DNA of 63,048 bases, filler included, from Octopus bimaculoides (lineage: Eukaryota): NCBI RefSeq assembly GCF_001194135.2. It is 4 parts of 4 records of this genome, joined end to end, with 100 filler letters (N's around TTAATTAATTAA, not from the genome) between each part and the next. Parts side by side here need not be neighbours in the genome. Positions count along the whole stretch, not along the records: positions 16,295 to 32,605 come from NC_068998.1; 3 more parts are not named here. One strand, given 5' to 3'. The notes beneath the pieces were generated by a model that made no database searches, was not told the origin of the DNA, and saw only the letters and a program-made list of their open reading frames with translations. Positions within the stretch are counted from its first letter, which is position 1. Each line of letters begins with the position of its first letter. Position numbers and translations under genes: made by a program. Of this stretch, positions 10,880 through 32,705 are shown piece after piece.

Positions 10880-11775
10880 ACTGGGCCTCTCTCTCAGAGT
10901 GAAAGGCAGATTGTATGATGCCTGCATGTGAACAGCTATACTACATGGCAGTAAAACATCGACTGTGACAGCTGAGGACATGTATAGGTTTGAAAGAAAT
11001 GAAGCCAGTATGCTTCACTGGATGTGCAATGTCAGTGTGCATGTTTGACAATGTGTAAGCATCTTGAGAGAAAAGTTGGGCATAAGAAGTATCAGATGTG
11101 GTGTGCAAGAGAGATGACTGCACTGGTATGGTCATGTGATGTGTATGGATGAGGACAGTTGCGTAAAGAAGTGCTGATTTCTAACTGTGGGGGAAACCTG
11201 TGGTAGAGGTAGACCCAGGAAGACATGGGACAGGGTGGTGAAGCAAGATCTTTGAACTTTGGGCTTCATAGAGGCAATGACTAGTGACTGAGACCTTTGG
11301 CAATATGCTGTGCTTGAAAAGACACGTCAAGCCAAGGGAAATCATAGTCATGATTGATGCTGATGTCACACAACTGGCACCCGTGCTGGTGGTATGTAAA
11401 AAGCACCTTTGGAGTGTTGGGCCTCACAGAGGCAAAGTGTTGGGCCACATGCAGGCAATGACTGAGACCATTGGCATTATGCTGTGCTTGAGAAGGCCCA
11501 TCAAGCCAAACAAAATCGCAGTTGTGATGGATACCAGTGTCACACAAATGGCACCCATGCCGGTGTCACGTAAAAGCACCTATTACGCTCTCAGAGTGGT
11601 TGGCATTAGGAAGGGCATCCAGCTGTAGAAACCATGCCAAATCAGACTGGAGTCTGGTGTAACCTTCCAGCTTGCCAGCCCTGGTCAAACCATCCAACTC
11701 ATGCCAGCATGAATAATGGATGCTAAATGATGGTGACGATGATGATGATAATGATGATGATGATAATGATGATGA
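10880..11775 (+). mobile_element. 5'-truncated RTE-type LINE (RT C-terminus, duplicated 3' module, (GAT)n tail)
   Basis: GLSLRVKGRLYDAC..AILHGS...FERNEASMLHWMC...LREKLGIRSI....ER*LHWYGHVM.MDEDSCVKKC...GRGRPRKTWDRVVKQDL: typical RTE C-terminal motifs, with several stops. Confidence 0.85.
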
Positions 11776-11866: not shown

Positions 11867-12031
11867 TGTCAGCAAGGTCAGTGAGCCTGATTGTGGTGAC
11901 ATTTCTTTTGCCAACTTTAGCTTTCTTCAGTGATGGACTCCAAGGATTGCCAAGCACCATATAAAATTCTTCTTCTTCTTCATGAATGTGGTCTCCCATT
12001 AGTTTGACAGCACACTGTTTCTCTCGTTCAC
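11867..12031 (-). CDS. FREM2: FREM2/ECM3-like exon (Calx-beta repeat, C-terminal half), phase 1-1
   Basis: Acceptor atgttttacag, donor gtaagt; 165 nt open: (G)EREKQCAVKLMGDHIHEEEEEFYMVLGNPWSPSLKKAKVGKRNVTTIRLTDLAD(K). Resembles the FREM2 Calx-beta segment GETEKPC...YEEVEELRLVLGTP...VGEQNETLIRIRDDADK (recalled, not searched). Joins in frame to exon 8488-8670. Confidence 0.9.
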
Positions 12032-12600
12032 CTGTAAAACATATTATCAATGCAATAAACTTTGAGTGTTGAAGACAGCAAAGTGGCAGAATTAGTAGCA
12101 TTTTGTTCATCTTTACGTTCTGAGTTCAAATTCTGCCAAGGTCGACTTTGCCTTTCAGAATTTCAGGGCTGATAAAATAAGTAGTGCTGGAGCACTGGGG
12201 TTGATGTAATTGACTTATCTACTCCCCTGAAGTTACTGGCCTTGTGCCAAAATTTGAAGCCAATAAACTTTGAGTACCATTTTTAGTTCTGTTAAGACAG
12301 TTAGTCCAAAGCTGATTTATTTATATTGAGTTGACAGTAATTAGTAAGGAATAAAATGCGATGGATTTAGTCAAAATAAAATGATTTCATCATAAACTGG
12401 GCTCTTACCATAACATGGAGTGGACACCACAGGTTAATAAGAAAACTCTATGGACAGTGTCCTTACTGGTTAGCATATTTAGTTATACCTATCTATCCCA
12501 CAAACTCAGTTAATATATTTTGTCTGTAGTTATAAACTATTGACCCTTGGGGATCCATATAAGAGTTTGCCATTAAAATTTATGTGTAACAAAATAGTTT

Positions 12601-12995
12601 ACTCTTTTACTCTTTTACTTGTTTCAGTCATTTGACTGCGGCCATGCTGGAGCACCGCCTTTAGTCGAGAAAATCGACCCCAGGACTTATTCTTTGTAAG
12701 CCTAGTACTTATTCCATCGGTCTCTTTTTGCCGAACTGCTAGGTTACGGGGACGTAAACACACCAGCATCGGTTGTCAAGCAATGGTGGGGGGACAAACA
12801 CACACAAACACACACACACATATATATATACATATATACGACGGGCTTCTTTCAGTTTCCGTCTACCAAATCCACTCACAAAGCTTTGGTCAGCCCGAGG
12901 CTATAGTAGAAGACACTTGCCCAAGGTGCCACGCAGTGGGACTGAACCCAGAACCATGTGGCTGGTAAGCAAACTACTTACCACACAACCACTCC
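12601..12995 (-). mobile_element. tRNA-derived SINE family A (window-local label), best-preserved copy
   Basis: Head ...tgtggtaagtagtttgcttaccagccacatggttctgggttcagtccc, (TG/TA)n middle, 3' ggcggtgctccagcatggccgcagtcaaatgactgaaacaagtaaaagagt. Other copies: 3300-3655 (+), 8975-9300 (-), 10570-10800 (-), 15085-15810 (+), 36560-37170 (+), 57860-58075 (-), 59479-59815 (-), and tails in block B. Confidence 0.9.
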
Positions 12996-14129
12996 TGCAC
13001 CTATACAATTCCTAATAATATTTAATTGTAAAAAGTATAGTAGGATTTTTTAAACATCAAATGGTTATGAGAGCCTGTCTGAGTGAAAGGGGTATCAAGA
13101 GTGCCCATAGGAAAAAGTGGTTGAGAACAACTAGTTCATAAAATAATCAGTGGGACAGGAGAGGGTTGGCACTTGTGACTTCTGCAGGCCCTCTCAGACT
13201 GGTGGTACTTAAGTTTTTAATGGCCAGTCAAATTATCTATGGGTCAATTTCTGTAGAAAAAAAAAGAAAGAAAATGAAGGTACAGGAAGGAACAGGAATC
13301 TTGTTTGGATTTGTGTGCACTTATGTTAAGCAACAGGTACACATGAGGAATTAAACTGAATTAAACTAACCAATTGCATTTGAGTCCAGTGCATGATTCA
13401 TAGCAAAAAAGAAATATGTGTGTATGTGTGTGTGTGTGTGTGTATTAACGAAATGACGATATCGTTTGAGTAGGTCTTAATTGTTTTCATCAACACCGTC
13501 ATCACCATCACCATAATCAACTTCACAACATCACTACCATGACCACCACCACTGCTAAACCCCCACCCTACCCCATTAATCCTACTGTCATCGGCAATGC
13601 TGCAGATAAGTATTTTGTCACTGCTGCTACTACTACTACTACTACCACCACCACCACCACTACTACTGCTGTCACCACTGCAATTCAAACAGGAGAACCG
13701 ATACTATGCAAGGAAGTTAATTACTATACATACTAATTACTTGCTTTTCTGTTCTCTGATTTTTTTTTTTGATTTTTTACCATATCATTATTTATTATTG
13801 CTGCTTTTGTAGTAATTGTTTAACCCTAGGCTAAATCTGATTCTGCTGATCCATGATTCCAGCCATGCTGTATATAATATGGAAGAAATTTAGCTGCTAT
13901 TTCTAGAAGGTCAAGCGACCATTTTAACAGCTCTCTAGTCACACTGTACTACAGCTATTACTACTGCTGCTACTGCTGCTACTGCTGCTACTGCTGCTAC
14001 TACTGCTGCTGCTGTTATTCTTTGCAACTTTTCACTTAATTTACTCTAATGATAAATATAAGGATATTGCATGCAAAATATGATTGCATTTCCTGTTGTA
14101 GTTGTCTTCTTCTTCTTCTTCTTCTTCTT

Positions 14130-14160
<31 letters not shown>

Positions 14161-15282
14161 TTATTATTATTATTATTACTATTATTCATATAGAATCTAC
14201 CAAAGGAAGTTGGTAACTTAATTTATTTGAGTTCCTGTAGTCACGGCTTTCAGTATTTGGCAAACTTGCGTTGGAATGCAATCTTTCCTGCCTAGACGAT
14301 AGGAAGGAAACTTGACACTAATTAACTATTTTGTTATTTGAACCAATAAGAAAGTTATTAATGACGACGAAGGTAATAACAATGATGACGATGATGATGA
14401 TTATGAGTTTTAGGATAATTATGATGATGATGATGATGATGCTGGTGGTGGTTATGTTTAAGCAATAAAAAAAAAAAATTTATTTTTATTTTTATAAAAT
14501 GGAACAAAGCCATACATTTTATTTTTTAAATCTATTAATTTTTACTAATTATTTGTTTTGTTGCCATTTTTGCTTTGTAGGGCAGTGTAATTGGTACAGA
14601 CTGGAGGAAGTTGGACTAGATTTCTTTAATAGTAATTTGGTTGCCTGTCTCATTGTTTTCTATTTAAATCTTGGTAGAATTAACTTAGAAAACATTCTCC
14701 AATCCCACCACCGGCAACACGTATGTATGTATGTATGTATGTATGTACGTATGTATGTATGCATGTGTGTATTTATATATATATATATATATATATACAC
14801 TTGTATGTATGTATGCATGTGTGTATTTATATATATATACATATATATATATACACTTGTCTGAGCTAATAAAGAAGACTTTGTTTAGCTGCCAGACCTG
14901 TGGACCTGTGAGAAATATAAGTCAAATCTCTCAAATAAATCCCTACTGTCTTTATAAAGAAAGGAGACATTTCATAGTATAGTTCTAGACATAAACAACA
15001 TACAGAATGGTTATAGCCAAAATGTTTTGATCATAGGTCTGCTTGGCTGGCTCTAACGTATGATTAAACAACAAATGTATATAGGCATGGCTGTGTGGTA
15101 AGAAGTTTACTTCCTCACCACATGGTTCCGGGTTCAGTCCCACAGTGTGACACTTTGGGCAGGTATCTTTTCCTATAGCTTCGGGCCGACCAAAATCTTG
15201 TGTCTTGTGAGTGGATTTGGTAGATGGAAACTGAAAGAAGCCCATCATATGTGTGTGTGTGTATGTGTGTGTGTGTGTGTGT

Positions 15283-16294: not shown

Positions 16295-17020
16295 TATATA
16301 TATATATTCATATTTACGTGTTTAGGACAGCGAGCTGGCAAAATCGCTTAGCATTTCGTCCGACTTATGGTGCTAGGACATATTCACCCGACTGCGACTT
16401 TCCCGTTTATCTTCTCTGGGTAAAAAAAATTAATAAATAATAAAATTATTATCAGTTGAACACTGAGGCGGATGTAATCAACTCTCAGTCAAAATATTCC
16501 AAACTATTTAATGATCCATTCCCTCCTAGATCCACTTGTAGCGATAATTTGTTTACAGAGTTTCAGCCCAGACAGTTGAACTCAACATAAGCCAGGCAAA
16601 TATTTTGTTTACGACTACAAATTTACACCTCACCTGTATTTGAATACAGCAAGTAGCGAGTAGGAACGTTCAGTCCGATTAAATACTACAGACTCGCAAA
16701 TTCTTCTGTAAATTTACCGAATTATATAAATAATAGCTTAATGTATTGGCTCAAGGCCAGCAATTCCTATGTCGCCATGTCTCACCGATTACATTGATGA
16801 CGGGACATGGCATGAACTGAAAGAGGAAAACATCATGTTGATCTTGACATGATTGGACCTCTGAAGGCCGGATGAAATGTTACTATGCACATATTTCCAA
16901 AGCTCGAATAATTCTACCAGTATATCACCATTTTACAATAGATATACTAAGCAATATGTATAGAATATTATTCCATGACATATATTATAATTTCTTCTCC
17001 AAATTTGTTTTTACTTTTAG

Positions 17021-17109
17021 TCGAATACATTTGTTCGGTCCCTGGCTCAGACAAAGGTTCCCTTTTTGTGCTAATTTATTCGCCGGCCTATTTACGGCGG
17101 TGAAATGTG
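17021..17109 (+). CDS. Candidate exon 3, copy 1, of a small Cys-rich secreted/GPI protein family (phase 2-1)
   Basis: Acceptor ttttacttttag, donor gtaaga; 89 nt: RIHLFGPWLRQRFPFCANLFAGLFTAVKC(G). This is the only frame open in all three copies. Confidence 0.62.
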
Positions 17110-17378
17110 GTAAGATATTTTCATTAACTATTGTAGTTTTACGAGAATTAATAATGTTTCAAAGGATTGAATACATACAATCGTTATTTTGCACTAAATT
17201 TTATTACCTAATATTCCAGTGAACACCTATTTTCATTGAATGGATCTATTATCTGCAACGAAATTGGCTTTTCTAATGTTATGGTTATCACTTAATAATT
17301 CTCATTCAGTTAAGCATAACTATAATCACTGTGTATATTGCGAGTATGTATATAAATATTGTAAGTAATTTCAACGGT

Positions 17379-17748
17379 GAAGGCGCAATGGCTCAGTGGT
17401 TAGGGCAGCGGACTCGCGGTCAAAGGATCGCGGTTTCGATTCCCAGACCGGGCGTTGTGAGTGTTTATTGAGCGAAAACACCTAAAGCCCCACAAGGCTC
17501 CAGCATGGGATGGTGGCGAACCCTGCTGTACTTGTTCACCATAACTTTCTCTCATTCTACCTACCTGTTTATGATGTACCTGTATTTCAAAGGGTCAGCC
17601 TTGTCACACTGTGTCACGCTGAATATCCCCGAGAACACACGTGTCTGTGAAGTGCTCAGCCACTTGCACGTTAATTTCACGAGCAGGCTGTTCCGTTGAT
17701 CGGATCAACTGGAACCCTCAAAGTCGTCAGCGACGGAGTGCCAACAAC
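17379..17748 (+). mobile_element. tRNA-derived SINE family C in intron 3 of the Cys-rich genes
   Basis: A box GGCTCAGTGGTT, B box GTTTCGATTCC, ends cgacggagtgccaacaac. Orthologous copies at 19110-19478 (+) and 31813-32183 (-); independent copy at 34781-35163 (-). Confidence 0.9.
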
Positions 17749-18066
17749 ACTGTATGCAATTTCAAGTATTTAAAATGTCATTAGCAATAAGATATAAATT
17801 TGTTAAGTCGAATCAATTGTTAAATTTTAATTTTTGTTAATTTGCAAATCAATAGAAGTTGGGAACGTACCAAATTGAGGACAGGAAGATTACAATAATA
17901 AAAACGTGCATTTTATATATATATATATTTTTTTGTTACAAGTCATTTTTATTAACGCTCTTTGAAAAGTCAATAAATATAACGAACAAATTAATTGATC
18001 ACCTATTTTCTATTTATTCTAAGTAGAAAATTGGTTTAAGAACCAGCAGTTTTCTAGTTCTTCTAG

Positions 18067-18161
18067 GCAGAGTACTGGCTCAAGAAAATGCTTCTCCTTC
18101 GTTCCGCCTTGAGTCAATATGGATCCTATTATTGCTTCTAATAATATCGGTATTGTTGTGA
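18067..18161 (+). CDS. Candidate terminal exon 4, copy 1: GPI-anchor-type signal
   Basis: Acceptor ttttctagttcttctag; phase 1 continues from exon 3: (G)RVLAQENASPSFRLESIWILLLLLIISVLL*. Small-residue triad N-A-S, polar spacer, 14-residue hydrophobic tail, then stop; AATAAA at 18212-18217. Confidence 0.6.
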
Positions 18162-18751
18162 CGAATGCTGTCTCAGCTGATGCTTATGTATTTCACGTAA
18201 ACATATTCATAAATAAAAACTGATTTCAAATTCTGTATGGTTTCTTTCTTGAAGAACGTAACAATCACTTAAAGTACAGTCGAAATATGAAGAAATCTGA
18301 GAAACAAAACATGTACTAAATTATCCTTCAAATAACTGTACACTAAACCTATAATTTCAATGTAATATAGTGAAATATCATTCTTTCAGTATGCAATTCA
18401 TATCACCGACACGGAAAGTTAGTCCGAAATAACACGCTAAATTAAGAATGAAATAATATTCTGACGTACGTCTAAGAATTGAAAGTTTATACGTTTCAGC
18501 ACTGGGTTATGTTTATCTATGATAAACTTACCCCAAAGAATCAAAATTATGGGGATTAAAGTCATTAAATGAATGGATTTGATTCTANNNNNNNNNNNNN
18601 NNNNNNNNNNNNNNNNNNNNNNNNNNNNNNNNNNNNNNNNNNNNNNNNNNNNNNNNNNNNNNNNNNNNNNNNNNNNNNNNNNNNNNNTATATAGAATGTT
18701 ATTCCATGACATATATTATAATTTTATCTCGAAATTTGTTTTTGCTTTTAG

Positions 18752-18840
18752 TCGAATAAATATGTTCTATGCCTGTTTCAAAAGACACTTCAGTTTTTGT
18801 GCTAATTTATTTGCCGACCTATTTAAGAAGGACAGATGTG
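18752..18840 (+). CDS. Candidate exon 3, copy 2, of the Cys-rich family
   Basis: Acceptor tttgcttttag, donor gtaaga; 89 nt: RINMFYACFKRHFSFCANLFADLFKKDRC(G). Confidence 0.65.
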
Positions 18841-19802
18841 GTAAGATATTTGCATTAACTATTGTAGGTTTGCGAAAATTAATAATGTTTGAAAGGATTG
18901 AATACATACAATCGTTATTTTGCACTAAATTTTATTACCTAATATTCCAGTGAACACCTATTTACATTGAATGGATCTATTATCTGCAAAGAAATTGGCT
19001 TTTCTAATGTTATGGTTATCACTTAATAATTCTCATTCAGTTAAGCATAACTATAATCACTGTGTATATTGCGAGTACGCATATAAATAGTGTAAGTAAT
19101 TTCATGGGTGAAGACGCAATGGCCCAGTGGTTAGTGCAGCGGACTCACGGTCAAAAGACCGCGGTTTCGATTCCCAGATCGGGCGAGGTGAGTGTGTATT
19201 GAGCGAAAACACCTAAAACTCCACGAGGCTCAAGCAGGGGATGCTGGCGTAATCTCTGTACTATTTCACCACAAATTTCTCTCACTCTAACTTTCTGTTT
19301 CTGATGTACTTGTATTTCAAAGGGTCAGACTTGTCACACTGTGTCACGCTGAATATCCCCGAGAACACACGTATCTGTGGAGTGCTCAGCCACTTGCACG
19401 TTAATTTCACGAGCAGGCTGTTCTGTTGATCGGATCAACTGGAACCCTCAAAGTCGTAAGCGACGAAGTGCCAACAACACTGTATGCAATTTCAAGTATT
19501 TAAAATTTCATTAGCAATAAAATATAAGTTATTTGTTAAGTCGAATCAATTGTTAAATTTCTATTTTTGTTAATTTGCAAATCCATTGAAGTTGAGAATG
19601 TACCAAATTGAGGACAGGAAGATTACAATAATAAAAACGTGCATTTTATATATATATATATATATTTTTTGTTACAAGTCATTTTTATTAACGCTAATTG
19701 AAAAGTCAATAAATATAACGAACACATTATTTGATCACCTATTTTCTATTTATTCTAGGTAGAAAAGACGCTAAGGAATCAGCAATTTTTTAGTTCTTCT
19801 AG

Positions 19803-19816
19803 AGAGTATTGGTTGA
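19803..19816 (+). CDS. Candidate terminal exon 4, copy 2: GPI tail out of frame (ends ESIG*)
   Basis: Homologous to 18067-18161 but lacks the first 2 nt (GC) after the acceptor, so phase 1 reads (E)SIG*. An alternative upstream acceptor at 19758 gives (G)RKDAKESAIF*. Either way no hydrophobic tail is made. Confidence 0.4.
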
Positions 19817-20858
19817 ACAAAATGCTCCTCCTTCGATCCGCCTTGAGTCAATATGGATCCTATTATTGCTTCTAATAATATNNNNNNNNNNNNNNNNNNN
19901 NNNNNNNNNNNNNNNNNNNNNNNNNNNNNNNNNNNNNNNNNNNNNNNNNNNNNNNNNNNNNNNNNNNNNNNNNNNNNNNNNNNNNNNNNNNNNNNNNNNN
20001 NNNNNNNNNNNNNNNNNNNNNNNNNNNNNNNNNNNNNNNNNNNNNNNNNNNNNNNNNNNNNNNNNNNNNNNNNNNNNNNNNNNNNNNNNNNNNNNNNNNN
20101 NNNNNNNNNNNNNNNNNNNNNNNNNNNNNNNNNNNNNNNNNNNNNNNNNNNNNNNNNNNNNNNNNNNNNNNNNNNNNNNNNNNNNNNNNNNNNNNNNNNN
20201 NNNNNNNNNNNNNNNNNNNNNNNNNNNNNNNNNNNNNNNNNNNNNNNNNNNNNNNNNNNNNNNNNNNNNNNNNNNNNNNNNNNNNNNNNNNNNNNNNNNN
20301 NNNNNNNNNNNNNNNNNNNNNNNNNNNNNNNNNNNNNNNNNNNNNNNNNNNNNNNNNNNNNNNNNNNNNNNNNNNNNNNNNNNNNNNNNNNNNNNNNNNN
20401 NNNNNNNNNNNNNNNNNNNNNNNNNNNNNNNNNNNNNNNNNNNNNNNNNNNNNNNNNNNNNNNNNNNNNNNNNNNNNNNNNNNNNNNNNNNNNNNNNNNN
20501 NNNNNNNNNNNNNNNNNNNNNNNNNNNNNNNNNNNNNNNNNNNNNNNNNNNNNNNNNNNNNNNNNNNNNNNNNNNNNNNNNNNNNNNNNNNNNNNNNNNN
20601 NNNNNNNNTATATATATATATATACAGAGAGAGAGAGAGAGAGACCGAGATACTCTCTTTTACTCCAACATTTTTTAGTCATTTGACTGCGGCCATGCTG
20701 GTGCACCACCCGTACTCGACCCCAAGACATTCTTTCTAGGCGTAGTACTTATTCTATCCTTCTTGGTTCCCGAACCTCTATGTTACGGGGACTCAACACA
20801 CCAACATTGTTTGTCAGGCGATTATGGCTGGATAAACGCACACACACTTCTATACATA

Positions 20859-20898
<40 letters not shown>

Positions 20899-23085
20899 CA
20901 CACGCACACACATATATATATGTTTTGTGTGTCTGTCTTTTTTCCTTACCATCGCTTGACGAACAATGTTAGTGTGTTCATGTCCATGTAAATTAGGTGT
21001 TCGGCAAAGAGGTCGACAGAATAAGTACCAGACTTAAAAGGTATATGTGATGGGGTGGATTTGTTCGACTAAAGACCAACTTCTAATATGGCCCAAGTTA
21101 AATGAGTGAAACAATTAAAAGAATACATGAATCTAAGAATAATATCTCAGTTTGGTACTTGCATACATAGCTACATACAATAAATATTCAGCCAAAAGGC
21201 TACATAGAACCAACTCCTGCCCATTCTATCATTTGACAGATTAAATTTCGAGAACTTTATGGAACGGTCAGTCTCTTTCAAGTTTGGAATATTACAATAA
21301 TTAGTGACAGCGGTGAAGTCTTTAAAAGTTTGAAAATAAAGAATTCCAAACCAATCCCTGTAAATTTCTACCAGTTCTGAATAAAATAACTGTATACAGA
21401 CATAAAACACACGTGTGTGTCTGTGTGAGCGTGTTTTCGCATACTACGTGCACGATTTTCTACTTTGCTGTGAAGGGTACAATTAACAGACAATTGGTTT
21501 TCCTGGAAGACGCCCTAGGGCCAGAATATGATTAGTAATTTGTGTTATCTCCCAGGATCTGCCAACACTTCAAACGATATTTCTACTCGAATACAATGTT
21601 ATACTTTGTCAGAATGAAATATGGCCTTATGTTTCTTGAGGAAGAAACAGTAGGTTAATTATATCTAATAGTTTATGAATATCCCATAAATATAATACAT
21701 GGCAATGACACATTATAAAATGTAAATTTCACTTCACTTCTGTGACATAAAACAACATTGCGGCTTCGCGGGTGTTTTATATATAAGGTTACAGAATATA
21801 TGTTCATCCACTGCTCCATCGCGTGAATGCTTCACTTCTTAACGATCTTCTTGTTATAAGTAAGTAGATATAATTTCGTTCATACACACACACCCACACA
21901 CACACCCACACAAACACACACANNNNNNNNNNNNNNNNNNNNNNNNNNNNNNNNNNNNNNNNNNNNNNNNNNNNNNNNNNNNNNNNNNNNNNNNNNNNNN
22001 NNNNNNNNNNNNNNNNNNNNNNNNNNNNNNNNNNNNNNNNNNNNNNNNNNNNNNNNNNNNNNNNNNNNNNNNNNNNNNNNNNTATATATATATATATATG
22101 CACATATACACATGTTCTCATATTCTTGCGATGTGCGTACAGTCTTTCATTGATGTGTATATAGACACATGCGTGCTTAAATTGATTCTGTCCATTATTT
22201 CATCTGGTTCATTATGTGTACCGTTTCAGACGAGTGAATATCATTTGATGTTCCTGACTACTGAATTGCTGAGCGAAAAATCGTAGCAAAGTACACACTT
22301 TACTGACAGCAATTGCAGACACAATATTACCTCAGAATTTCGGCGACAAGCGCTCATGTAAAGCATTCAGAACTTTTGCAATCCCCGATAAATTATTGGC
22401 ACTAAATCCCGAGTAACGTACTGCCGAATAGACTCATAGATCTCTTTCGAACATACAACACGTGACTCTCATTCAATTACCCGGAGCAAATGGATCATAT
22501 TAACGAGTGGATATTATTCAATAACGTGTGATAATAAATAGGAACAGAAGAACTTAGCTGTTTGCAACAGTAAGATGACATTATTATTCATCAAACTACT
22601 GACTTGACGCAAAATTTCATACGGAAAATATTTTGCTTCTGAACAATCGAGGAAGGAGTGTGCCAACACGCAATTATGAGAGCAGAATAGAAATTGTAGA
22701 AACGAGTGAGCCAAGAGCAGAAAAATTGTAGAAAGTCAAAGTGAAGATTTAGGAAGTAGTTTACTGAACAAACAGCATTTAGAATGCAAGCTNNNNNNNN
22801 NNNNNNNNNNNNNNNNNNNNNNNNNNNNNNNNNNNNNNNNNNNNNNNNNNNNNNNNNNNNNNNNNNNNNNNNNNNNNNNNNNNNNNNNNNNNACTCGACC
22901 CCAAGACATTCTTTCTAGGCGTAGTACTTATTCTATCCTTCTCGGTTCCCGAACCTCTATGTTACGGGGACTCAACACACCAGCATTGTTTGTCAGGCGA
23001 TTATGGGAGGATAAACGCACACACACTTCTATACATACACACATACACACACACACACACACACACGCACACACACATACACACC

Positions 23086-23118
<33 letters not shown>

Positions 23119-25359
23119 GTATATTTTGTGTGCCTGTCTTTTTTCCTTACCATCGCTTGACGAACAATATTAGTGAGTTCATGTCCATGTAAATTAGGTG
23201 TTCGGCAAAAGAGGTCGACAGAATAAGTACCAGACTTAAAAGGTATATGTGATGGGGTCGATTTGTTCGACTAAAGACCAACCTCTAATATGGCCCCAGT
23301 TAAATGAGTGAAGCAATTAAAAGAATACAAGAATCTAAGAATAATATCTCAGTTTGGTACTTGCATACATAGCTACATACAATAACTATTCAGCCAAATG
23401 GCTACATAGAACCAACTCCTGTCCATTCTATCATTTGACAGATTAAATTTCGAGGACTTTATGGAACGGTCAGTCTCTTTCAAGTTTGGAATATTACAAT
23501 AATTAGTGACAGCGGTGAAGTCTTTAAAAGTTTGAAAATAAAGAATTCCAAACGAATCCCTGTAAATTTCTACCAGTTCTGAATAAAATAACTGTATACA
23601 GACATAAAACACACGTGTGTGTCTGTGTGAGCGTGTTTTCGCACACTACGTACAAGATTTTCTACTTTTCTGTGAAGGGTACAATTAACAGACAATTGAT
23701 TTTCCTGGAAGACACCCTGGGGCCAGAATATGATTAGTAATTTGTGTTATCTCCCAGGATCTGCCAACACTTCAAACGATATTTCTACTCGAATACAACG
23801 TTATACTTTGTCAGAATGAAATATGGCCTTATGTTTCATGAGGAAGAAACAGTAGGTTAATTATATCTAATAGAATATGAATATCCCATAAACATAATGC
23901 ATGACAATGACACGTTATAAAATGTAAATTTCACTTCACTTCTGTGACATAAAACAACATTGCGGCTTCGCGGGTGTTTTATATATAAGGTTACAGAATA
24001 TATGTTCATCCACTGCTCCATCGCGTGAATGCTTCACTTCTTAACGATCTTCTTGTTATAAGTAAGTAGATATAATTTCCTTCATACACACACACACACA
24101 CTCGCACAAACACACACACACACACACGCACCCACACGCATATATATATGCACATATACACATGTTCTCATATTCTTGCGATGTGCGTACAGTCTTTCAT
24201 TGATGTGTATATAGACTCATGCGTGCTTAAATTGATTCTGACCATTATTTCATCTGGTTCATCATGTGTTCCAGTTCAGACGAGTGAATATCACTTGCTG
24301 TTCCTGACCAGTAAATTGCTGAGCGAAAAACCGTAGCAAAGTACACACTTTACTGACAGCAATTGCAGACACAATATTACCTCAGTAATTCTGCGACAAC
24401 CGCTCATGGAAAGCATTCAGAACTTTTGCAATCTCCGATAAATTATTGGCACTAAATTCCGAGTAACATACTGCTGAATAGACTCATAGATCTCTTTCGA
24501 ACAAACAACACGTGACTCTCATTCAATTACCCAGAGCAAATGGATCATATTAACGAGTGGATATTATTCAATAACGGGTGATAATAAATAGGAAGAGAAG
24601 AACTTAGCTGTTTGCAACAGTAAGATGACAATAGTATTCATCAAACTACTGACTTGACGCAAAATTTCATACGGNNNNNNNNNNNNNNNNNNNNNNNNNN
24701 NNNNNNNNNNNNNNNNNNNNNNNNNNNNNNNNNNNNNNNNNNNNNNNNNNNNNNNNNNNNNNNNNNNNNNNNNNNNNNNNNNNNNNNNNNNNNNNNNNNN
24801 NNNNNNNNNNNNNNNNNNNNNNNNNNNNNNNNNNNNNNNNNNNNNNNNNNNNNNNNNNNNNNNNNNNNNNNNNNNNNNNNNNNNNNNNNNNNNNNNNNNN
24901 NNNNNNNNNNNNNNNNNNNNNNNNNNNNNNNNNNNNNNNNNNNNNNNNNNNNNNNNNNNNNNNNNNNNNNNNNNNNNNNNNNNNNNNNNNNNNNNNNNNN
25001 NNNNNNNNNNNNNNNNNNNNNNNNNNNNNNNNNNNNNNNNNNNNNNNCAGGAATTATAATACATAATACTACAGATTTCGATCTTATCCACTTCCTCAAA
25101 GTTTCCACACAAGTCATCCCCGATACAAATAAAAATCATATTTAGAATATGTGAAGTCTTCAAATTTTATAAAATATGCATTTAAATAGAGTACCTGAAT
25201 ATTTATTTCGACATATGAAACAATAGTAATAAAATTTGTTTGCATTCATTTCAAAGGAGTCCAATTTATGTCACACCATTAGAATTTTGCGCCACTCTAA
25301 TATATTTCAATTTTTTAAAATTTTAACAGTTGGAACTGAGTATGATTCGAGTAACAACG

Positions 25360-25393
25360 ATGAAATACTGTGTATGTATTCTTGTCTGTGTTC
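25360..25393 (+). CDS. Candidate coding exon 1 (signal-peptide start), plus-strand copy
   Basis: ATG AAA TAC TGT GTA TGT ATT CTT GTC TGT GTT C|gtaagt = MKYCVCILVCV, phase 1, strong donor. Its exon 2 would lie beyond the 100-N join at 26027. Confidence 0.5.
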
Positions 25394-25514
25394 GTAAGTA
25401 ACGTGTAATTTTTTTCATAAATTATTTTATGCGTAATATATGATTCTTTTCTCTCTTTCTCGACATTTATGTGTGTGAGAGAGGGAGTATGTGTATGTGT
25501 CTTTTGCTGTATAT

Positions 25515-25566
<52 letters not shown>

Positions 25567-26361
25567 GTGTATGTATGTATGTGTGTGTGTGTCTGTACAT
25601 GTTGTTGGGCGTGAGTGCATATGTGTGTATCACAAATACTGCTTTGAACCCCGACTTAGAGAAAGCAGATGTCTTGGATTCAGTCGCGTTTATTTGTTTC
25701 AATTTAGACACGATTTTTCAAGAACAGAAGGATGCATTACAAAGAATCATTCAGGTATGATTGGCCTCGCGACCAGCCCGAACCATTTAGATAGGGAGAC
25801 CGATTCGGACAAGGATTCTGGTCAATATTTGCGGTTTTGTTTTTGTTAATTTTTGAGAGTGGTGTGGTGTATTTTTAGTATTTCTTGCTCGTGAACGCAG
25901 TCGAGTTTATTTCAGATATTCTGGTTTTAAAAATCATTTCCGGCTAATCGTTGGGAGGAAGTTGGTGTTTTCTTCGCGGAGATTTGGTCTCTCTAATTAT
26001 TCTTGTTGATATTCTAATAAACAATTNNNNNNNNNNNNNNNNNNNNNNNNNNNNNNNNNNNNNNNNNNNNNNNNNNNNNNNNNNNNNNNNNNNNNNNNNN
26101 NNNNNNNNNNNNNNNNNNNNNNNNNNCAACCGGACGGAAATCACTCGTAGAGGGCACTAAATTGCTCATCAGTTATGACCCAAAATATTAATACTGATTT
26201 TCGCACAATTAACGGTAAAACTGTATTTCCTTGAGATTTCGTCCTCTATTACTCGTTGTTTATTTACAATGTATTTTTCATTTATGATAAATATATACAT
26301 TAATACATTCAATTATTAAAACTATGAATGAAAATAATCATTATAAAGAAAGCGAACTTAC

Positions 26362-26461
26362 TTGCACAATAATGTGTCAGGATCACGTATAGGATATACT
26401 CTCATAGTTTTATTACAAGTTTTCTTGGCCTGTTCGTAGCAAAATTCTGATACCGCAGCAT
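26362..26461 (-). CDS. Candidate exon 2 of the Cys-rich family (phase 1-2)
   Basis: Acceptor aaatttatag (weak pyrimidine tract), donor gtaagt; 100 nt open: (H)AAVSEFCYEQAKKTCNKTMRVYPIRDPDTLLC(N). Phase-compatible with exon 1 upstream on the same contig and with the 89-nt exon 3. Confidence 0.58.
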
Positions 26462-27505
26462 CTATAAATTTATTATTAATTCAATAGACATTTATGTTTT
26501 ATCGTTTTCTTTATTTCACTCATTGAAGAGTTGTTACGTATTGGTACTGACATTATGAATTTAGCACAAGAAATATTTCCGAACATGGAACACATGATAT
26601 ATGCTTATGTTTCCGAGACACTAAATATTAACGATTCCAATGAACCATCACACAAAATGTAAGCTGGTTCTGAATCAACGCAATCAGAAAGGCAAACAGG
26701 TACACATATTCATATATGTTTAAATGGGCTTCTTGCATTTTCCACTATCTCCAATTTTATTCATCGTTCTGTTGATGTAGTAGAGGAAACTGAACCAGTG
26801 TAGCACGTATTGTTTCTCGATCCTAGACGATGTTAATGAGGAGCAAACGTCTCAAATACACAGTCATACAAGTGCTTAGTGTTATAATTTGAAGGACGAT
26901 TTTGTTTAAATTTCGTTTTTGCGTTCATAGTTCGGATCTTTTATCATTTTTTGATCATACAACAACATTGGCAATAAGAAATCTGAGAGTTTATGGTCTA
27001 AGAATAAAAATAAAATGACAACTATATTGGTGTCGTCTTTTCCAAATTATTTATTAGAATATGAACAAGAACAATAAGAGAGACCAAATCTCCGCGAAGA
27101 AAACACCAACTTCCTCTCAACGATTAGCCGGAAATGATTTTTAAAACCAGAATATCTGAAATAAACTCGACTGCGTTCACGAGCAAGAAATACTAAAAAT
27201 GCATCACACCACTCTCAAAAATTAACAAAAACAAAACCGCAAATATTGACCAGAATCCTTGTCCGAATCGATCTCCCTATCTAAATGGTTCGGGCTGGTC
27301 GCGAGGCCAATCATACCTGAATGATTCATTCTAATGCATCCTTCTGTTCTTGAAAAATCGTGTCTAAAGTGAAACAAATAAACGCGACTGAATCCAAGAC
27401 ATCTGCTTTCTCTAAGTCGGGGTTCAAAGCAGTATTTGTGATACACACATATGAAGTCACGCCCAACAACATGTACAGACACACACACACACACATACAT
27501 ACATA

Positions 27506-27546
<41 letters not shown>

Positions 27547-27663
27547 ATACAGCAAATGACACAGACACATACTCTCTCTCACACACATAAATGTCGAGAA
27601 AGAGATAAAAGAATCATATATTACGCATAAAATAATTTATGAAGAAAATTACACGTTACTTAC

Positions 27664-27697
27664 GAACACAGACAAGAATACCTATACAGTATTTCAT
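27664..27697 (-). CDS. Candidate coding exon 1 (signal-peptide start), minus-strand copy
   Basis: MKYCIGILVCV + C|gtaagt. Spliced to 26362-26461 it gives MKYCIGILVCVHAAVS-EFCYEQ..., a plausible 16-aa signal peptide with A-x-S cleavage site. Confidence 0.58.
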
Positions 27698-29145
27698 CGT
27701 TGTTACTCGAATCATACTCGGTTCCAACTGTTAAAATTTTAAAAAATTGAAATATATTAGAGTGGCGCAAAATTTTAATGGTGTGACTAAATTGGACTCC
27801 TTTGAAATGAATGCAAACAAATTTTATTACTATTGTTTCATATGTCGAAATAAATATTCAGGTACTCTATTTAAATGCATATTTTATAAAATGTTTCTCT
27901 TTGAAGACTTCACATATTCTAAATATGATTTTTATTTGTATCGGGGATGTCGTGTGTGGAAACTTTGAGGAAGTGGATAAGATCGAAATCTGTAGTATTA
28001 TGTATTATAATTTCTCGTCTTGTTGCTGTTGCTGAAGTGAACTTCACGTTCTTTTGTGGTTACGTTTATAATATTCATTTCACAGTCGTATATGCTCTTA
28101 ATTCTAGAACCTCCGCTCCATTTTCAGAGCTTGCATTCTAAATGCTGTTTGTTCAGTAAACTACTTCCTAAATCTTCTCTTTGACATTCTACAATTTTTC
28201 TGCTCTTGGCTCACTCGTTTCTACAATTTCTATTCTGCTCTCATCATTGCGTGTTGGCACACTCCTTCCTCGATTGTTCAGTAGCAAAATATTTTCCGTA
28301 TGAAATTTTGCGTCAAGTCAGTAGTTTGATGAATAATATTGTCATCTTACTGTTGCAAACAGCTAAGTTCTTCTCTTCCTATTTATTATCACCCGTTATT
28401 GAATAATATCCACTCGTTAATANNNNNNNNNNNNNNNNNNNNNNNNNNNNNNNNNNNNNNNNNNNNNNNNNNNNNNNNNNNNNNNNNNNNNNNNNNNNNN
28501 NNNNNNNNNNNNNNNNNNNNNNNNNNNNNNNNNNNNNNNNNNNNNNNNNNNNNNNNNNNNNNNNNNNNNNNNNNNNNNNNNNNNNNNNNNNNNNNNNNNN
28601 NNNNNNNNNNNNNNNNNNNNNNNNNNNNNNNNNNNNNNNNNNNNNNNNNNNNNNNNNNNNNNNNNNNNNNNNNNNNNNNNNNNNNNNNNNNNNNNNNNNN
28701 NNNNNNNNNNNNNNNNNNNNNNNNNNNNNNNNNNNNNNNNNNNNNNNNNNNNNNNNNNNNNNNNNNNNNNNNNNNNNNNNNNNNNNNNNNNNNNNNNNNN
28801 NNNNNNNNNNNNNNNNNNNNNNNNNNNNNNNNNNNNNNNNNNNNNNNNNNNNNNNNNNNNNNNNNNNNNNNNNNNNNNNNNNNNNNNNNNNNNNNNNNNN
28901 NNNNNNNNNNNNNNNNNNNNNNNNNNNNNNNNNNNNNNNNNNNNNNNNNNNNNNNNNNNNNNNNNNNNNNNNNNNNNNNNNNNNNNNNNNNNNNNNNNNN
29001 NNNNNNNNNNNNNNNNNNNNNNNNNNNNNNNNNNNNNNNNGTTTGTGTGTGTGTGAGTGAGTGTAATTAATAAAAAACCAAAGGAAATAAAAAGAGTAAT
29101 AGCACAGCGTGAGGACCCGGTACATGCAAAAGTGAGATATTTGTG

Positions 29146-29195
<50 letters not shown>

Positions 29196-30966: not shown

Positions 30967-31002
30967 CTTTAACGTTTCGACTGTACGCTCGTCCACAGAA
31001 AG
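30967..31002 (-). ncRNA. Second minimal hammerhead-like motif (degenerate), inside a (TA)n-flanked repeat at about 30860-31075
   Basis: Minus strand CTTT-CTGTGGA-C-gagcgtacagtc-GAAAC-GTT-AAAG: perfect stem I and palindromic AACGTT helix III; core variant CTGTGGA and a partly broken stem II. Confidence 0.4.
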
Positions 31003-31483
31003 GAACACAGAAAGAAACAGGAGTGACAATAAGGAATGTGTAGTGGGTAGCGAGCCATCATAGCGAAACCTAATATATAAGGTATCAATTTCTAGACGTA
31101 CGTCACAATATTATTTCATTCTTAATTTGGCCTGTTATTTCGGACTAACTTTCCGTGTCGGTGATATGAATTGCATACTGAAAGAATGATATTTCACTAT
31201 ATTACATTGAAATTATAGGTTTAGTGTACAGTTATTTGAAGGATAATTTAGTACATGTTCTGTTTCTCAGATTTCTCCATATTTTGACTGTAGTTTAAGC
31301 GATTGTTACGTTCTTCAAGAAAGAACCATACGGAATTTGAAATCAGTTTTTATTTATGAATATGTTTACGTGAAATACATAAGCATCAGCTGAGACAGCA
31401 TTCGTCACAACAATACCGATATTATTAGAAGCAATAATAGGATCCATATTGACTCAAGGCGGATCGAAGGAGGAGCATTTTGT

Positions 31484-31497
31484 TCAACCAATACTCT
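31484..31497 (-). CDS. Candidate terminal exon 4, copy 3: GPI tail out of frame
   Basis: Same 2-nt loss as copy 2 (ends ESIG*); the hydrophobic IWILLLLLIISVLL* frame is still present in the DNA down to 31405 but out of phase. Confidence 0.4.
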
Positions 31498-32452
31498 CTA
31501 GAAGAACTAAAAAATTGCTGATTCGTTAGCGTATTCTCTATCTAGAATAAATAGAAAATAGGTGATCAATTAATTTGTTCGTTATATTCATTGACTTTTC
31601 AATAAGCGTTAATATAAATGACTTGTAACAAAAAAATATATATATATAAAATGCACGTTTTTATTATTGTAATCTTCCTGACCTCAATTTGGTACATTCT
31701 CAACTTCAATGGATTTGCAAATTAACAAAAATAGAAATTTAACAATTGATTCGACTTAACAAATTTATATTTTATTGCAAATGAAATTTTAAATACTTGA
31801 AATTGCATACAGTGTTGTTGGCATTCCGTCGCTTACGACTTTGAGGGTTCCAGTTGATCCGATCAACAGAACAGCCTGCTCGTGAAATTAACGTGCAAGT
31901 AGCTGAGCACTCCACAGACACGTGTGTTCTCGGGGATATTCAGCGTGACACAGTGTGACAAGTCTGACCCTTTGAAATACCAGTACATCAGAAACAGGAA
32001 GTTAGAGTGATAGAAATGTGTGGTGAAAGAGTACAGCAGGTTACGCTACCATCCCCTGCTTGAGCCTCGTGGAGCATTAGGTGTTTTCGCTCAATAAACA
32101 CTCACATCGCCCAGTCTGGGAATCGAAACCGCGGTCCTATGACCGTGAGTCCGCAGCACTAACCACTAGGCCATTGCACCTTCACCCTTGAAATTACATA
32201 CAATATTTATATGCATACTCGCAATATACACAGTGATTATAGTTATGCTTAACTGAATGAGAATTATTAACTGATAACCAAACCATTAGAAAAGCCAATT
32301 TCATTCAAGATAATAGTTCCATTCAATGAAAATAGGTGTTCACTGGAATATTAGGTAATAAAATTTAGTGCAAAATAACGATTGTATGTATTCAATCCTT
32401 TGAAACATTATTAATTTTCGTAAAAGTACAATAGTTAATGCCAATATCTTAC

Positions 32453-32541
32453 CATATCTCTCCTTCTTAAATAGGTCGGCAAATAATTTAGCACAAAAAC
32501 CGAAGTGACTTTTGAAACAGGCAAGGAACATATTTATTCGA
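32453..32541 (-). CDS. Candidate exon 3, copy 3, of the Cys-rich family
   Basis: Acceptor tttgcttttag, donor gtaaga; 89 nt: RINMFLACFKSHFGFCAKLFADLFKKERY(G). The last Cys is replaced by Tyr. Confidence 0.6.
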
Positions 32542-32705
32542 CTAAAAGCAAAAATAAATTTCGAGATAAAATTATAATATATGTCATGGAATAACATTCT
32601 ATATANNNNNNNNNNNNNNNNNNNNNNNNNNNNNNNNNNNNNNNNNNNNTTAATTAATTAANNNNNNNNNNNNNNNNNNNNNNNNNNNNNNNNNNNNNNN
32701 NNNNN

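Follow-up and report, generated by a model that had tools for sequence, protein, structure and literature searches.

Introduction

Time and again, toxins and soluble regulators have arisen by a switch from an anchored to a released protein. CD55/DAF can be either GPI-anchored or soluble, depending on a splice variant with a shifted reading frame at the C-terminus. The paralogues FCGR3A and FCGR3B (Fc-gamma-RIIIA/B) differ in anchoring through small C-terminal changes, and the RGMs are GPI-anchored. To our knowledge, the founding mutation of such switches is seldom visible.

We analysed a 63,048-nucleotide stretch of Octopus bimaculoides DNA (the window), in which three copies of a small gene lie in one piece (positions 16,295 to 32,605, NC_068998.1). 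Among them is an unannotated gene with very high expression, described here for the first time; the octopus protein family to which it belongs is uncharacterised. We propose that the steps of an anchored-to-released switch are legible here in neighbouring paralogues and related species, namely duplication of a splice acceptor, exonisation of a splice signal as a stop codon and later decay of the untranslated tail. A search of the literature on octopus GPI proteins and tandem duplication found nothing on this six-cysteine family.

Results

A six-cysteine octopus family

The genes belong to a family of uncharacterised octopus proteins with a signal peptide and six-cysteine, RGM_N-like domains. 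Members are LOC128249887 (XP_052830408, 233 aa) and LOC128248155 (XP_052824892, 540 aa) of O. bimaculoides and CAI9735841 (293 aa) of O. vulgaris; exon B′ of the window matches XP_052824892, XP_052830408 and CAI9735841 (phmmer matches in octopus proteins, E = 5e-7 to 5e-5). The alignment gives the window genes and the family a common pattern, C-x7-C-x16-C-x8-C-x7-C-x12-C, with YP..PD..C.RL..Y..C. Against a family profile built from 13 repeats, exon B′ scores 27 bits, and exon A of copies 2 and 3 scores 15.2 and 14.5 bits (0/300 shuffles as high for each); copy 3 lacks Cys6. Exon A of copy 1 scores 1.7 bits, a value equalled by 13 of 300 shuffles, and fails when taken alone. The frame used for exon A is the only one that is open in all three copies. 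Whereas the window genes have one domain, the annotated octopus six-cysteine proteins have 3–9.

The exon architecture is also that of the family: the signal-peptide exon and exon A both end in phase 1 and exon B, between them, in phase 2, and a tail exon follows. The copy 2 phases are confirmed by RNA junctions at 18752 and 18840. LOC128249887 has the same phases in its signal-peptide exon, B and A (...TGC CCT G/gt), followed by a tail exon with a single acceptor (ttcttcag/GAGATATG...). In the annotated members this final exon is entered in phase 1 right after Cys6 and encodes an N-[SA]-x-P motif and a hydrophobic tail. The LOC128249887 tail reads C-PGDMPADNSVP-CIVTLNSILLAVLQWAIF, with N and P spaced from Cys6 as in copy 1 (C-GRVLAQENASP...), and 18067..18161 of copy 1 matches the family tail exon in position and phase. 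The hydrophobic tail that the first-pass annotation had pointed out is thus a genuine family feature, the counterpart of a coding exon in annotated paralogues, and not a chance ORF.

A relation to RGM exists only for the family as a whole and is a distant one, since family member P0004 passes Pfam RGM_N (PF06535; 37.9 bits against a cut-off of 24.2) and the window composite of B′ and A gives no RGM_N match in Pfam. Among the relatives, P0002 scores 10.4 for RGM_N and P0003 has no match. RGM_C has no match in P0002–P0004, which are all repeats of the N-like domain only. The top PDB match of the repeat profile is the RGMB N-domain (4uhz_B), over ...D..FC.aLRaY.gC.......C, at a weak E of 0.075. 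Pfam found no match in the window peptides. Word-indexed searches with the copy 2 peptide, the hypothetical copy 1 C-terminus and a 126-aa composite did not find the window proteins in the protein collection, and looking up the 116-aa read-through ORF as an exact product returned no record.

Layout of the cluster

Small genes of this family form a tandem cluster, partly mis-scaffolded, of which the piece contains fragments (Table 1). Exon X reaches a depth of 12,000–47,000 in RNA run X12, against ~48 in its flanks. Exon Z1, from our reading of the sequence, would encode MKYCVCILVCV-HA/A in frame with B′; it is similar to MKIIICIFFLIC and MKDCISICLLIAG of annotated paralogues and ends in the identical phase. 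The 5′ exons of copies 1–3 lie outside the piece or in gaps, where the draft assembly leaves them hidden. Exons X, Z1 and B are tied to exon A of the copies by homology and by 25 nt of upstream exon in RNA (...KIDIYYC/N). The end of this upstream exon as read from RNA (AAATCGACATATACTACTGCAA) and a loose end (TTTGATTTCTTAACTACATTCTTA) are absent from the window, even at three mismatches.

The two sides of the gap at 18588–18687 are not continuous, and no coding comparison spans it. A 637-nt RNA contig starts 95% like 16741–16912 and ends exactly as 18688–18781; the 371 nt between match nothing in the window, so that at least ~540 nt are missing at the gap. The missing content includes the copy 2 homologue of 16741–16956.

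Two candidate exons were rejected. ‘Z2’ (~25704–25750) breaks the Z1–B phase, and its minus-arm copy has a stop; the stretch 17219–17360, between exon A and a SINE, is interrupted by stop codons in every one of the three frames and is conserved in the manner of an intron. Scans of the piece for tRNAs and Rfam families found no match.

Table 1. Positions in the window of exons, acceptor units and the assembly gap.
Feature	Position	Strand	Remarks
Copy 1 exon A	17021..17109	+	(N)RIHLFGPWLRQRFPFCANLFAGLFTAVKC; donor G/gtaag; second half of six-Cys domain; Cys4 to W
Copy 1 unit 1 (duplicated acceptor unit)	18024..18066	+	ancestral AG moved to 18022-23
Copy 1 unit 2 and tail ORF	18067..18161	+	(G)RVLAQENASPSFRLESIWILLLLLIISVLL, stop; GC 18067-68; stop 18159-61
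3′UTR common to all copies	18162..18215	+	RNA coverage stops ~18213; AATAAA 18212-17
Assembly gap	18588..18687	.	between copy 1 3′ flank and copy 2 intron upstream of exon A
Copy 2 exon A	18752..18840	+	(N)RINMFYACFKRHFSFCANLFADLFKKDRC; Cys4–Cys6 intact
Copy 2 last-exon coding part (unit 1)	19759..19793	+	acceptor AG 19757-58; (G)RKDAKESAIF; TAG 19791-93
Copy 2 unit 2 and tail remnant	19803..19881	+	without GC; 3′UTR in observed mRNA; depth ~190,000; gap from 19882
Exon X, further copy	21740-21859	+	
Exon X, probably 5′UTR exon of family gene	23942..24061	+	donor TTATAA/gtaagt
Exon Z1, predicted start codon and signal peptide	25330..25393	+	MKYCVCILVCV; phase-1 end /gtaagt; sequence reading
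Exon B′ (first domain half)	26362..26461	-	(H)AAVSEFCYEQAKKTCNKTMRVYPIRDPDTLLC(N); borders ag/../gtaagt; in frame with Z1
Exon Z1, second copy	~27660-27725		minus arm
Exon X, further copy	29482-29601	-	
Copy 3 unit 2 and complete tail remnant	31405..31497	-	out of frame, within 3′UTR
Copy 3 last-exon coding part	31507..31541	-	upstream acceptor; (D)REYANESAIF; TAG 31507-09
Copy 3 exon A	32453..32541	-	(N)RINMFLACFKSHFGFCAKLFADLFKKERY; Cys6 to Y

A two-nucleotide difference behind the acceptor

In the three-copy alignment, copy 1 has GC at 18067–68, directly 3′ of the acceptor AG at 18065–66. These two bases (alignment columns 1194–95) are missing from copy 2, whose exon would begin at 19803, and from copy 3, at 31497 on the minus strand. 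That the copies differ by these 2 nt, as first noticed from the sequence, is borne out by independent contigs of O. bimaculoides DNA: run X1 has an exact copy 1 contig across 17992–18132 and a second contig with 2 nt missing at 18067. Read with the phase-1 G of exon A (17021–17109), copy 1 continues as GRVLAQENASPSFRLESIWILLLLLIISVLL to the TGA at 18159–61, and it is the only one of the three copies with the tail (...NASPSFRLESIWILLLLLIISVLL, stop) in frame. By a crude heuristic of our own, this tail divides into NAS, PSFRLE and SIWILLLLLIISVLL, that is, small omega residues, a polar spacer and a terminal hydrophobic stretch.

The acceptor at the indel would give copies 2 and 3 the ending ESIG, and an upstream acceptor gives GRKDAKESAIF (copy 2) or DREYANESAIF (copy 3). 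The upstream site had been described as AG in copies 2 and 3 but AA in copy 1. Position 18022 is indeed G in the former and A in the latter, but copy 1 does have an AG, displaced by one base (18022–23). The tail region is identical between copies, and its persistence out of frame can be followed in full in copy 3 but in copy 2 only to 19881, where a gap begins.

Copies 2 and 3 are spliced to the upstream acceptor

Expression of the locus is known from one RNA sample, X12, in the form of short contigs, which drop rare isoforms. Both copy 2 and copy 3 are transcribed there at very high depth: exons reach ~2–5×10^5 against 100–200 in introns, and copy 2 exon A has a k-mer depth of 200,000–490,000. 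Twelve contigs link 18752 to an upstream exon ending ...ATCGACATATACTACTGCAA. At the other end of exon A, 18840 is joined to 19759 with GT..AG intron ends, in five contigs and seven loose ends. Translation of copy 2 stops at TAG 19791–93, with a product ending ...CGRKDAKESAIF. The corresponding copy 3 junction is present in an RNA contig (...ATG/ATAGAGAATACGCTAACGAATCAGCAA). The endings GRKDAKESAIF and DREYANESAIF, which the first-pass annotation had listed as an alternative, are therefore the ones made; its ESIG ending is not seen, all spliced contigs of copies 2 and 3 taking the upstream acceptor. In these contigs splicing does not restore the hydrophobic frame, and the observed C-termini are hydrophilic and tail-less, without the GPI-type layout (...GRKDAKESAIF, stop).

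Since translation of copies 2 and 3 ends ~10 nt upstream of the indel, the indel lies in their 3′UTR. The proposal that the 2-nt indel caused the loss of the tail is contradicted by these junctions.

Copy 1 behaves differently. Its exon A is found in one X12 contig only, at a depth of ~1400 (~0.3–0.7% of that of copy 2), and this contig is odd, continuing into other sequence. No spliced RNA contig reaches 18067, and at a likeness of at least 90% none is spliced over 18038–18081. The idea of copy 1 as the working membrane-tethered partner finds no support in the RNA, and, with Cys4 lost and the upstream AG shifted by one base, its function as an anchored form is doubtful; it is either a decaying gene or one active in an unsampled tissue. 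The broader claim, that one family yields tethered and released forms, holds up in that tail-bearing and tail-less forms both exist; copy 1 is a doubtful example of the former.

The exons are absent from RNA runs X25, X32 and X43–45 (the last being 2026 raw-read runs), and 15 older RNA runs of the species contained none of the locus words.

The upstream acceptor is a tandem duplicate

The upstream acceptor stems from a tandem duplication of ~43 nt comprising the original acceptor and the start of the exon. Units 1 and 2 are identical at 30 of 44 positions, a score reached by none of 5000 shuffles. The stop codon of copies 2 and 3 is formed by the old pyrimidine tract and its ‘tag’, which are now exonic. 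Contigs of related species and other paralogues, the latter known from other runs as 30-nt loose ends and mismatch lists, carry a single acceptor unit, with the tail frame preserved; the two length changes seen in them, +6 and −12 nt, are each divisible by three. The G at 18022 and both bases at 18067–68 are present in related-species and paralogue contigs. Copies 2 and 3 and related species B share the G at 18022.

With two units in place, acceptor choice might be regulated within one gene, so that tail-less and tail-bearing forms arise by alternative splicing wherever unit 2 is intact (copy 1 and a species-B contig). Both units have good pyrimidine tracts, copy 1 exon starts at 18058 and 18067 both enter the tail (other acceptors give short or unrelated ends), and in the species-B dual-unit contig, with GT at 18067–68, unit 2 stays in frame even though 12 nt are deleted. 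However, dual acceptor use is not seen in RNA: copies 2 and 3 show the upstream site only, and among the joints listed at a likeness of at least 98% no second one leaves exon A. Copies 2 and 3 may make minor use of the downstream acceptor, but we consider regulated splicing unlikely as the explanation of the locus.

Divergence and decay

It is quite improbable that the copies are simply decaying duplicates whose tail ORF is an accident of a T-rich 3′UTR, with no distinction between anchored and released products. AT-rich DNA easily yields Leu/Ile-rich ORFs, and our crude GPI filter lets through 2 of the 267 ORF ends that occur naturally in the piece and 0.18% after shuffling, so that a GPI layout alone is weak evidence. 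Cys4 is missing in copy 1 and Cys6 in copy 3, and the identity of the tail between copies could reflect gene conversion, not constraint on a protein. Against this, the tail exon has a coding counterpart in annotated paralogues, with which it agrees in position, phase and N-x-x-P motif, relatives carry in-frame indels, and copy 2 combines an intact domain with very high expression. Exon A differs by 26–28% between copy 1 and copies 2/3, introns by 5–6% (Fisher p ~5e-9), and exon A has a pN/pS of 2–3. Exons that diverge faster than introns are not a product of neutral decay. Copy 3 is expressed despite its missing Cys6, and normal folding is thus not required of every expressed copy.

The weakest reading, which we regard as highly improbable, takes the GC indel behind the downstream acceptor as the switch itself, with copy 1 GPI-anchored and copies 2 and 3 secreted by frameshift (ESIG): the indel is real and present in DNA contigs, and the downstream acceptor puts only copy 1 in the tail frame, but every spliced contig of copies 2 and 3 takes the upstream acceptor, their stop precedes the indel, no spliced contig covers the copy 1 acceptor region, and copy 1 exon A is nearly silent and without Cys4.

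Discussion

Duplication of the acceptor, taken as a whole account of tail loss, is in our judgement the probable explanation. The splice junctions, stop codons, duplication, family membership and conserved exon phases are shown by the data; from them we infer the order of events. A family gene would consist of five exons: X (5′UTR), Z1 (signal peptide), B, A and the last exon. Exon B would supply Cys1–3 and exon A Cys4–6 of a six-cysteine domain of ~55 residues, a putative distant relative of the RGM N-terminal domain. Some 30 residues would be encoded by the last exon, which is entered in phase 1: small residues around N-[SA]-x-P, then a short polar spacer and a hydrophobic stretch at the very end, a layout that resembles a GPI-attachment signal. 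From this layout, tail-bearing forms are predicted to be GPI-anchored.

In the lineage of copies 1–3, a segment of ~43 nt would have been duplicated in tandem, running from the pyrimidine tract through the acceptor AG to ~27 nt into the last exon. The upstream unit is the one to which copies 2 and 3 are spliced, and this makes the former pyrimidine tract and its ‘tag’ exonic, with an in-frame TAG 11 codons past the last cysteine. The product would be a single-domain protein of ~70 residues without omega region or hydrophobic tail, presumably secreted. The tail, by then 3′UTR, would have lost its 2 nt afterwards; in this order the loss is a consequence of the switch and not its cause. Copy 1 keeps the tail in frame behind the downstream acceptor, but its upstream AG has moved by one base, its domain is without Cys4, and its RNA is scarce and aberrant.

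We put forward only tentatively, as possible rather than probable, a wider reading: that an octopus-restricted expansion of GPI-tailed, RGM-N-like proteins gave rise, via the 43-nt duplication of a 3′ splice site, to a tail-less single-domain peptide with extreme expression in one tissue and under diversifying selection. If true, an anchored protein would have been recruited as a secreted effector (venom, mucus or reproductive), with the intermediates preserved next to one another: genes with one acceptor, genes with two acceptors and an intact tail, and genes with two acceptors and a decayed tail.

Compared with RGMa/b/c, the octopus family gives partial matches, over ~25–30 of 70 positions; it repeats the N-like domain and is without the RGM_C or autocleavage part. 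Within the family itself, copies 2 and 3 have an 11-residue hydrophilic end via the duplicated acceptor, in contrast to the tail of their annotated six-cysteine relatives.

A parallel with snake three-finger toxins from Ly6/uPAR ancestors had also been drawn. The analogy stands for the mechanism but not for the fold: the domain is not LU, and among known domains the N-terminal one of RGM comes closest to it. UPAR_LY6 has no match in the window peptides or in relatives P0002–P0004, and the cysteine spacing is unlike that of the LU domain (8–10 Cys, CCxxxxCN before the omega site). As in the Ly6/uPAR system (2023, PMC10421932), an anchored small cysteine-rich family has released paralogues, and exons diverge fast within a tandem cluster. 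Unlike that system, only the acceptor and the exon start were duplicated in the octopus copies, and the stop comes from exonised splice-site sequence. We do not extend the toxin role of Ly6/uPAR-derived proteins to the octopus genes.

The switch is a further case of the already known anchored-to-secreted kind. CD55/DAF and FCGR3A/B are vertebrate immune genes with unrelated domains, whereas in the octopus a duplicated 3′ splice site has made the switch a fixed difference between paralogues.

Organization of the locus

The piece at 16295-32605 (NC_068998.1) is AT-rich animal DNA with numerous assembly gaps, and alignment identified in it three copies, roughly 90% identical to each other, of a two-exon unit. 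Exon A, which encodes the second half (Cys4-6) of a 6-Cys domain and has a single open frame only in all three copies, is followed by an intron, in which a SINE-like, highly repeated element lies, and by a last exon. The element (roughly 370 nt, one per copy: 17375-17745, 19105-19480 and, on the minus strand, 31830-32190) has a k-mer depth of at least 10^6 in DNA runs (flanks about 20-60); its head is tRNA-like by eye, and ARAGORN and Rfam give no call for it. Depths far above the surroundings also occur at 16415-16534 (about 1000-1700, DNA runs) and 23182-23245 (about 12,000-15,000, RNA run X12), which are probably pieces of other dispersed repeats.

Table. Coordinates of the gene units and exons
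Feature	Position	Strand	Evidence or reading
Copy 1	16957-18587	+	alignment of the three copies
Copy 2	18688-19881	+	alignment of the three copies; end lost to gap
Copy 3	31050-32605	-	alignment of the three copies
Exon A (89 nt), copy 1	17021-17109	+	each unit
Exon A (89 nt), copy 2	18752-18840	+	each unit
Exon A (89 nt), copy 3	32453-32541	-	each unit
Exon X (120 nt), probable 5'UTR	21740-21859, 23942-24061	+	X12 depth 12,000-47,000; GTAAGT donor
Exon X (120 nt), probable 5'UTR	29482-29601	-	X12 depth 12,000-47,000; GTAAGT donor
Z1, predicted start-codon exon	25330-25393, downstream of X		MKYCVCILVCV; ends in phase 1
B' (100 nt), Cys1-3 half of domain	26362-26461	- (minus arm)	reads AAVSEFCYEQAKKTCNKTMRVYPIRDPDTLLC

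The 5' exons of copies 1-3 themselves fall outside the piece. B' is in frame with Z1 and its end phase is that needed by exon A. Exon X at 23942-24061 holds two short upstream ORFs, ATGTTCATCCACTGCTCCATCGCGTGA and ATGCTT...TTATAA (ending exactly at the donor), and an internal TATATATAA stretch.

The gap at 18588-18687 lies between the 3' flank of copy 1 and the intron of copy 2, and no reading frame compared spans it. A 637-nt RNA contig starts with 16741-16912 (95%) and ends with 18688-18781 (exact), its middle 371 nt being placed nowhere in the stretch; therefore at least about 540 nt are missing at this gap, the flanks of which are not contiguous, and the upstream region of copy 2 is homologous to that of copy 1. 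A second gap, at 19882, takes away the end of the copy 2 tail. Inverted pairs (I1-I12, 16959-32603) make the piece a large imperfect palindrome, copy1-copy2-X-Y-X-Y-Z / centre 26028-27049 / Z'-Y'-X'-copy3', in which the gene 5' parts (X, Z1) of the two arms face each other, gaps occur at every joint and B' is confined to the centre. This arrangement is probably a mis-scaffolded tandem gene array and not a true inverted duplication.

Acceptor choice and C-terminal endings

The first-pass annotation had interpreted a 2-nt indel as a possible switch between a GPI-anchored (copy 1) and a secreted (copies 2 and 3) product. The indel is real: in the three-copy alignment, copy 1 continues from acceptor AG 18065-66 straight into GC (18067-68), a dinucleotide missing from copies 2 and 3, and both states occur in DNA contigs of run X1 (one exact copy-1 contig, one with '2 left out' at 18067). 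The endings read from it were also reproduced. Via acceptor 18065-66 and with the phase-1 G from exon A, the copy 1 ending is GRVLAQENASPSFRLESIWILLLLLIISVLL*; for copies 2 and 3 it is ESIG* via the downstream acceptor and GRKDAKESAIF* / DREYANESAIF* via the upstream one. At position 18022 of the upstream acceptor, copies 2 and 3 have G where copy 1 does have A, but copy 1 carries an AG displaced by one base (18022-23), and its use would produce another ending, of 29 residues.

The transcripts argue against the indel as cause. The RNA evidence consists of short contigs from a single older run, X12; the exons were not found in X25 and X32 (same study), in X43-45 (three 2026 raw-read runs) or in the other runs listed. 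Copy 2 yields a very abundant spliced RNA, with X12 k-mer depths of 2-5x10^5 in exons and 100-200 in introns. At the 5' joint of its exon A (18752; 12 X12 contigs) the upstream exon ends ...AAAAAATCGACATATACTACTGCAA and the frame continues from ...KIDIYYC into N. At the 3' side, 18840 is joined to 19759, the upstream acceptor (GT..AG; 5 contigs, plus 7 loose ends), and no second joint out of exon A at ≥ 98% likeness was present among the joints listed for X12 contigs. A copy 3 contig, in which ...ATATG is joined to ATAGAGAATACGC..., uses the upstream acceptor again. The products of copies 2 and 3 thus terminate in ...CGRKDAKESAIF* (TAG 19791-93) and ...YDREYANESAIF* (TAG 31507-09), and both the indel and the hydrophobic ORF are 3'UTR there. 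For copy 1, no spliced RNA contig over 18038-18081 was found at ≥ 90% likeness; the sole contig over this region is unspliced (depth 103).

Exon A of copy 1 occurs in a lone 150-nt X12 contig (depth about 1400; 17015-17109 + 21740 / 23942 / 29601). It carries 6 intronic bases (TTTTAG) to the left of the exon and continues rightward into TCCTGTGACATAAAAC..., the start of exon X; farther left is unrelated sequence, TTTGATTTCTTAACTACATTCTTA. Both unexplained junctions have AC before them in the genome, not AG, and stops occur in every frame. Read-through transcription into the following gene, rearrangement of a paralogue or chimera formation in the library could each account for this contig.

The domain and the tail in relatives

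Word-indexed protein searches with the gene's peptides gave no match. Exhaustive phmmer with B' matched O. bimaculoides XP_052824892 and XP_052830408 and O. vulgaris CAI9735841, each of them with a signal peptide and with the 6-Cys domain repeated 3-9 times; the first half of this domain is matched by B' and the second by exon A. Against a profile of 13 repeats B' scores 27 bits and exon A 15.2 (copy 2), 14.5 (copy 3) and only 1.7 (copy 1); 0/300 shuffles equalled the score of copy 2 and 0/300 that of copy 3. Cys4 is replaced by W in copy 1 and Cys6 by Y in copy 3. One relative scores 37.9 bits with Pfam RGM_N (cut-off 24.2), and the top PDB matches of the repeat profile are RGMB N-terminal domains (E = 0.075), which suggests a distant and partial relationship to RGM_N.

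XP_052830408 ends ...C-PGDMPADNSVPCIVTLNSILLAVLQWAIF, CAI9735841 ...C-PQDLPEPNSAPCIVTLNSILLAIPVWSIF and copy 1 ...C-GRVLAQENASPSF..., with N and P at equal distances from Cys6 in all three. In LOC128249887, the locus of XP_052830408, exon phases are those in the window and the tail has its own last exon, with one acceptor and phase 1 entry. A single acceptor unit and an in-frame tail likewise occur in DNA contigs from three related species and from further same-species paralogues; their two length differences (+6 and -12 nt) are each divisible by three, and they keep G at 18022 and both bases at 18067-68. On these comparisons the hydrophobic tail is the normal C-terminus of the family. LOC128249887 also has its signal-peptide exon (MKIIICIFF) twice (11243-11269 and 14925-14951 of the locus), which agrees with its annotation, where the six isoforms include alternative first coding exons.

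Divergence between copies

When copy 1 is compared with copies 2/3, 26-28% of the sites in exon A are different, against 5-6% in the introns (Fisher p about 5e-9); in the last exon the figure is 18% for the first 85 nt and 0 for the next 120 nt (Fisher p about 1e-4). The coding segments (17021-17109, 18024-18110) diverge about five times faster than the introns around them, and among comparable copies no difference occurs in the following 120 nt, which hold the hydrophobic tail and 3'UTR. Exon A has a pN/pS of 2-3, and all 7 changes that separate copy 2 from copy 3 are non-synonymous. The pattern is consistent with diversifying selection acting on coding sequence while gene conversion evens out the rest. 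Pseudogenisation, the alternative offered in the first-pass annotation, is disfavoured, as neutral decay would not yield such exon-over-intron divergence.

Discussion

The 44 nt around the upstream and downstream acceptors are identical at 30/44 positions, a score reached by 0/5000 shuffles, and the two regions are tandem duplicates. When the upstream acceptor is used, the downstream copy's old pyrimidine tract and its 'tag' are read as ...ATT TTT TAG, which is the stop codon; as this precedes the indel, the 2-nt deletion of copies 2 and 3 sits in already untranslated sequence.

The GPI layout proposed for copy 1 passes a crude filter, but the filter also accepts 2/267 ORF ends from the piece itself and 0.18% of those obtained by shuffling, and taken alone the layout proves little. 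The proposal that one family yields tethered and released forms stands in part: the tail is normal in relatives and copies 2 and 3 lack it, but GPI anchoring and secretion are what we infer from this. The likeness to snake three-finger toxins lies in the route, since the duplication-then-stop suggested for the octopus gene resembles the one favoured for those toxins, in which the C-terminal exon was duplicated and a stop codon followed (PMC10421932).
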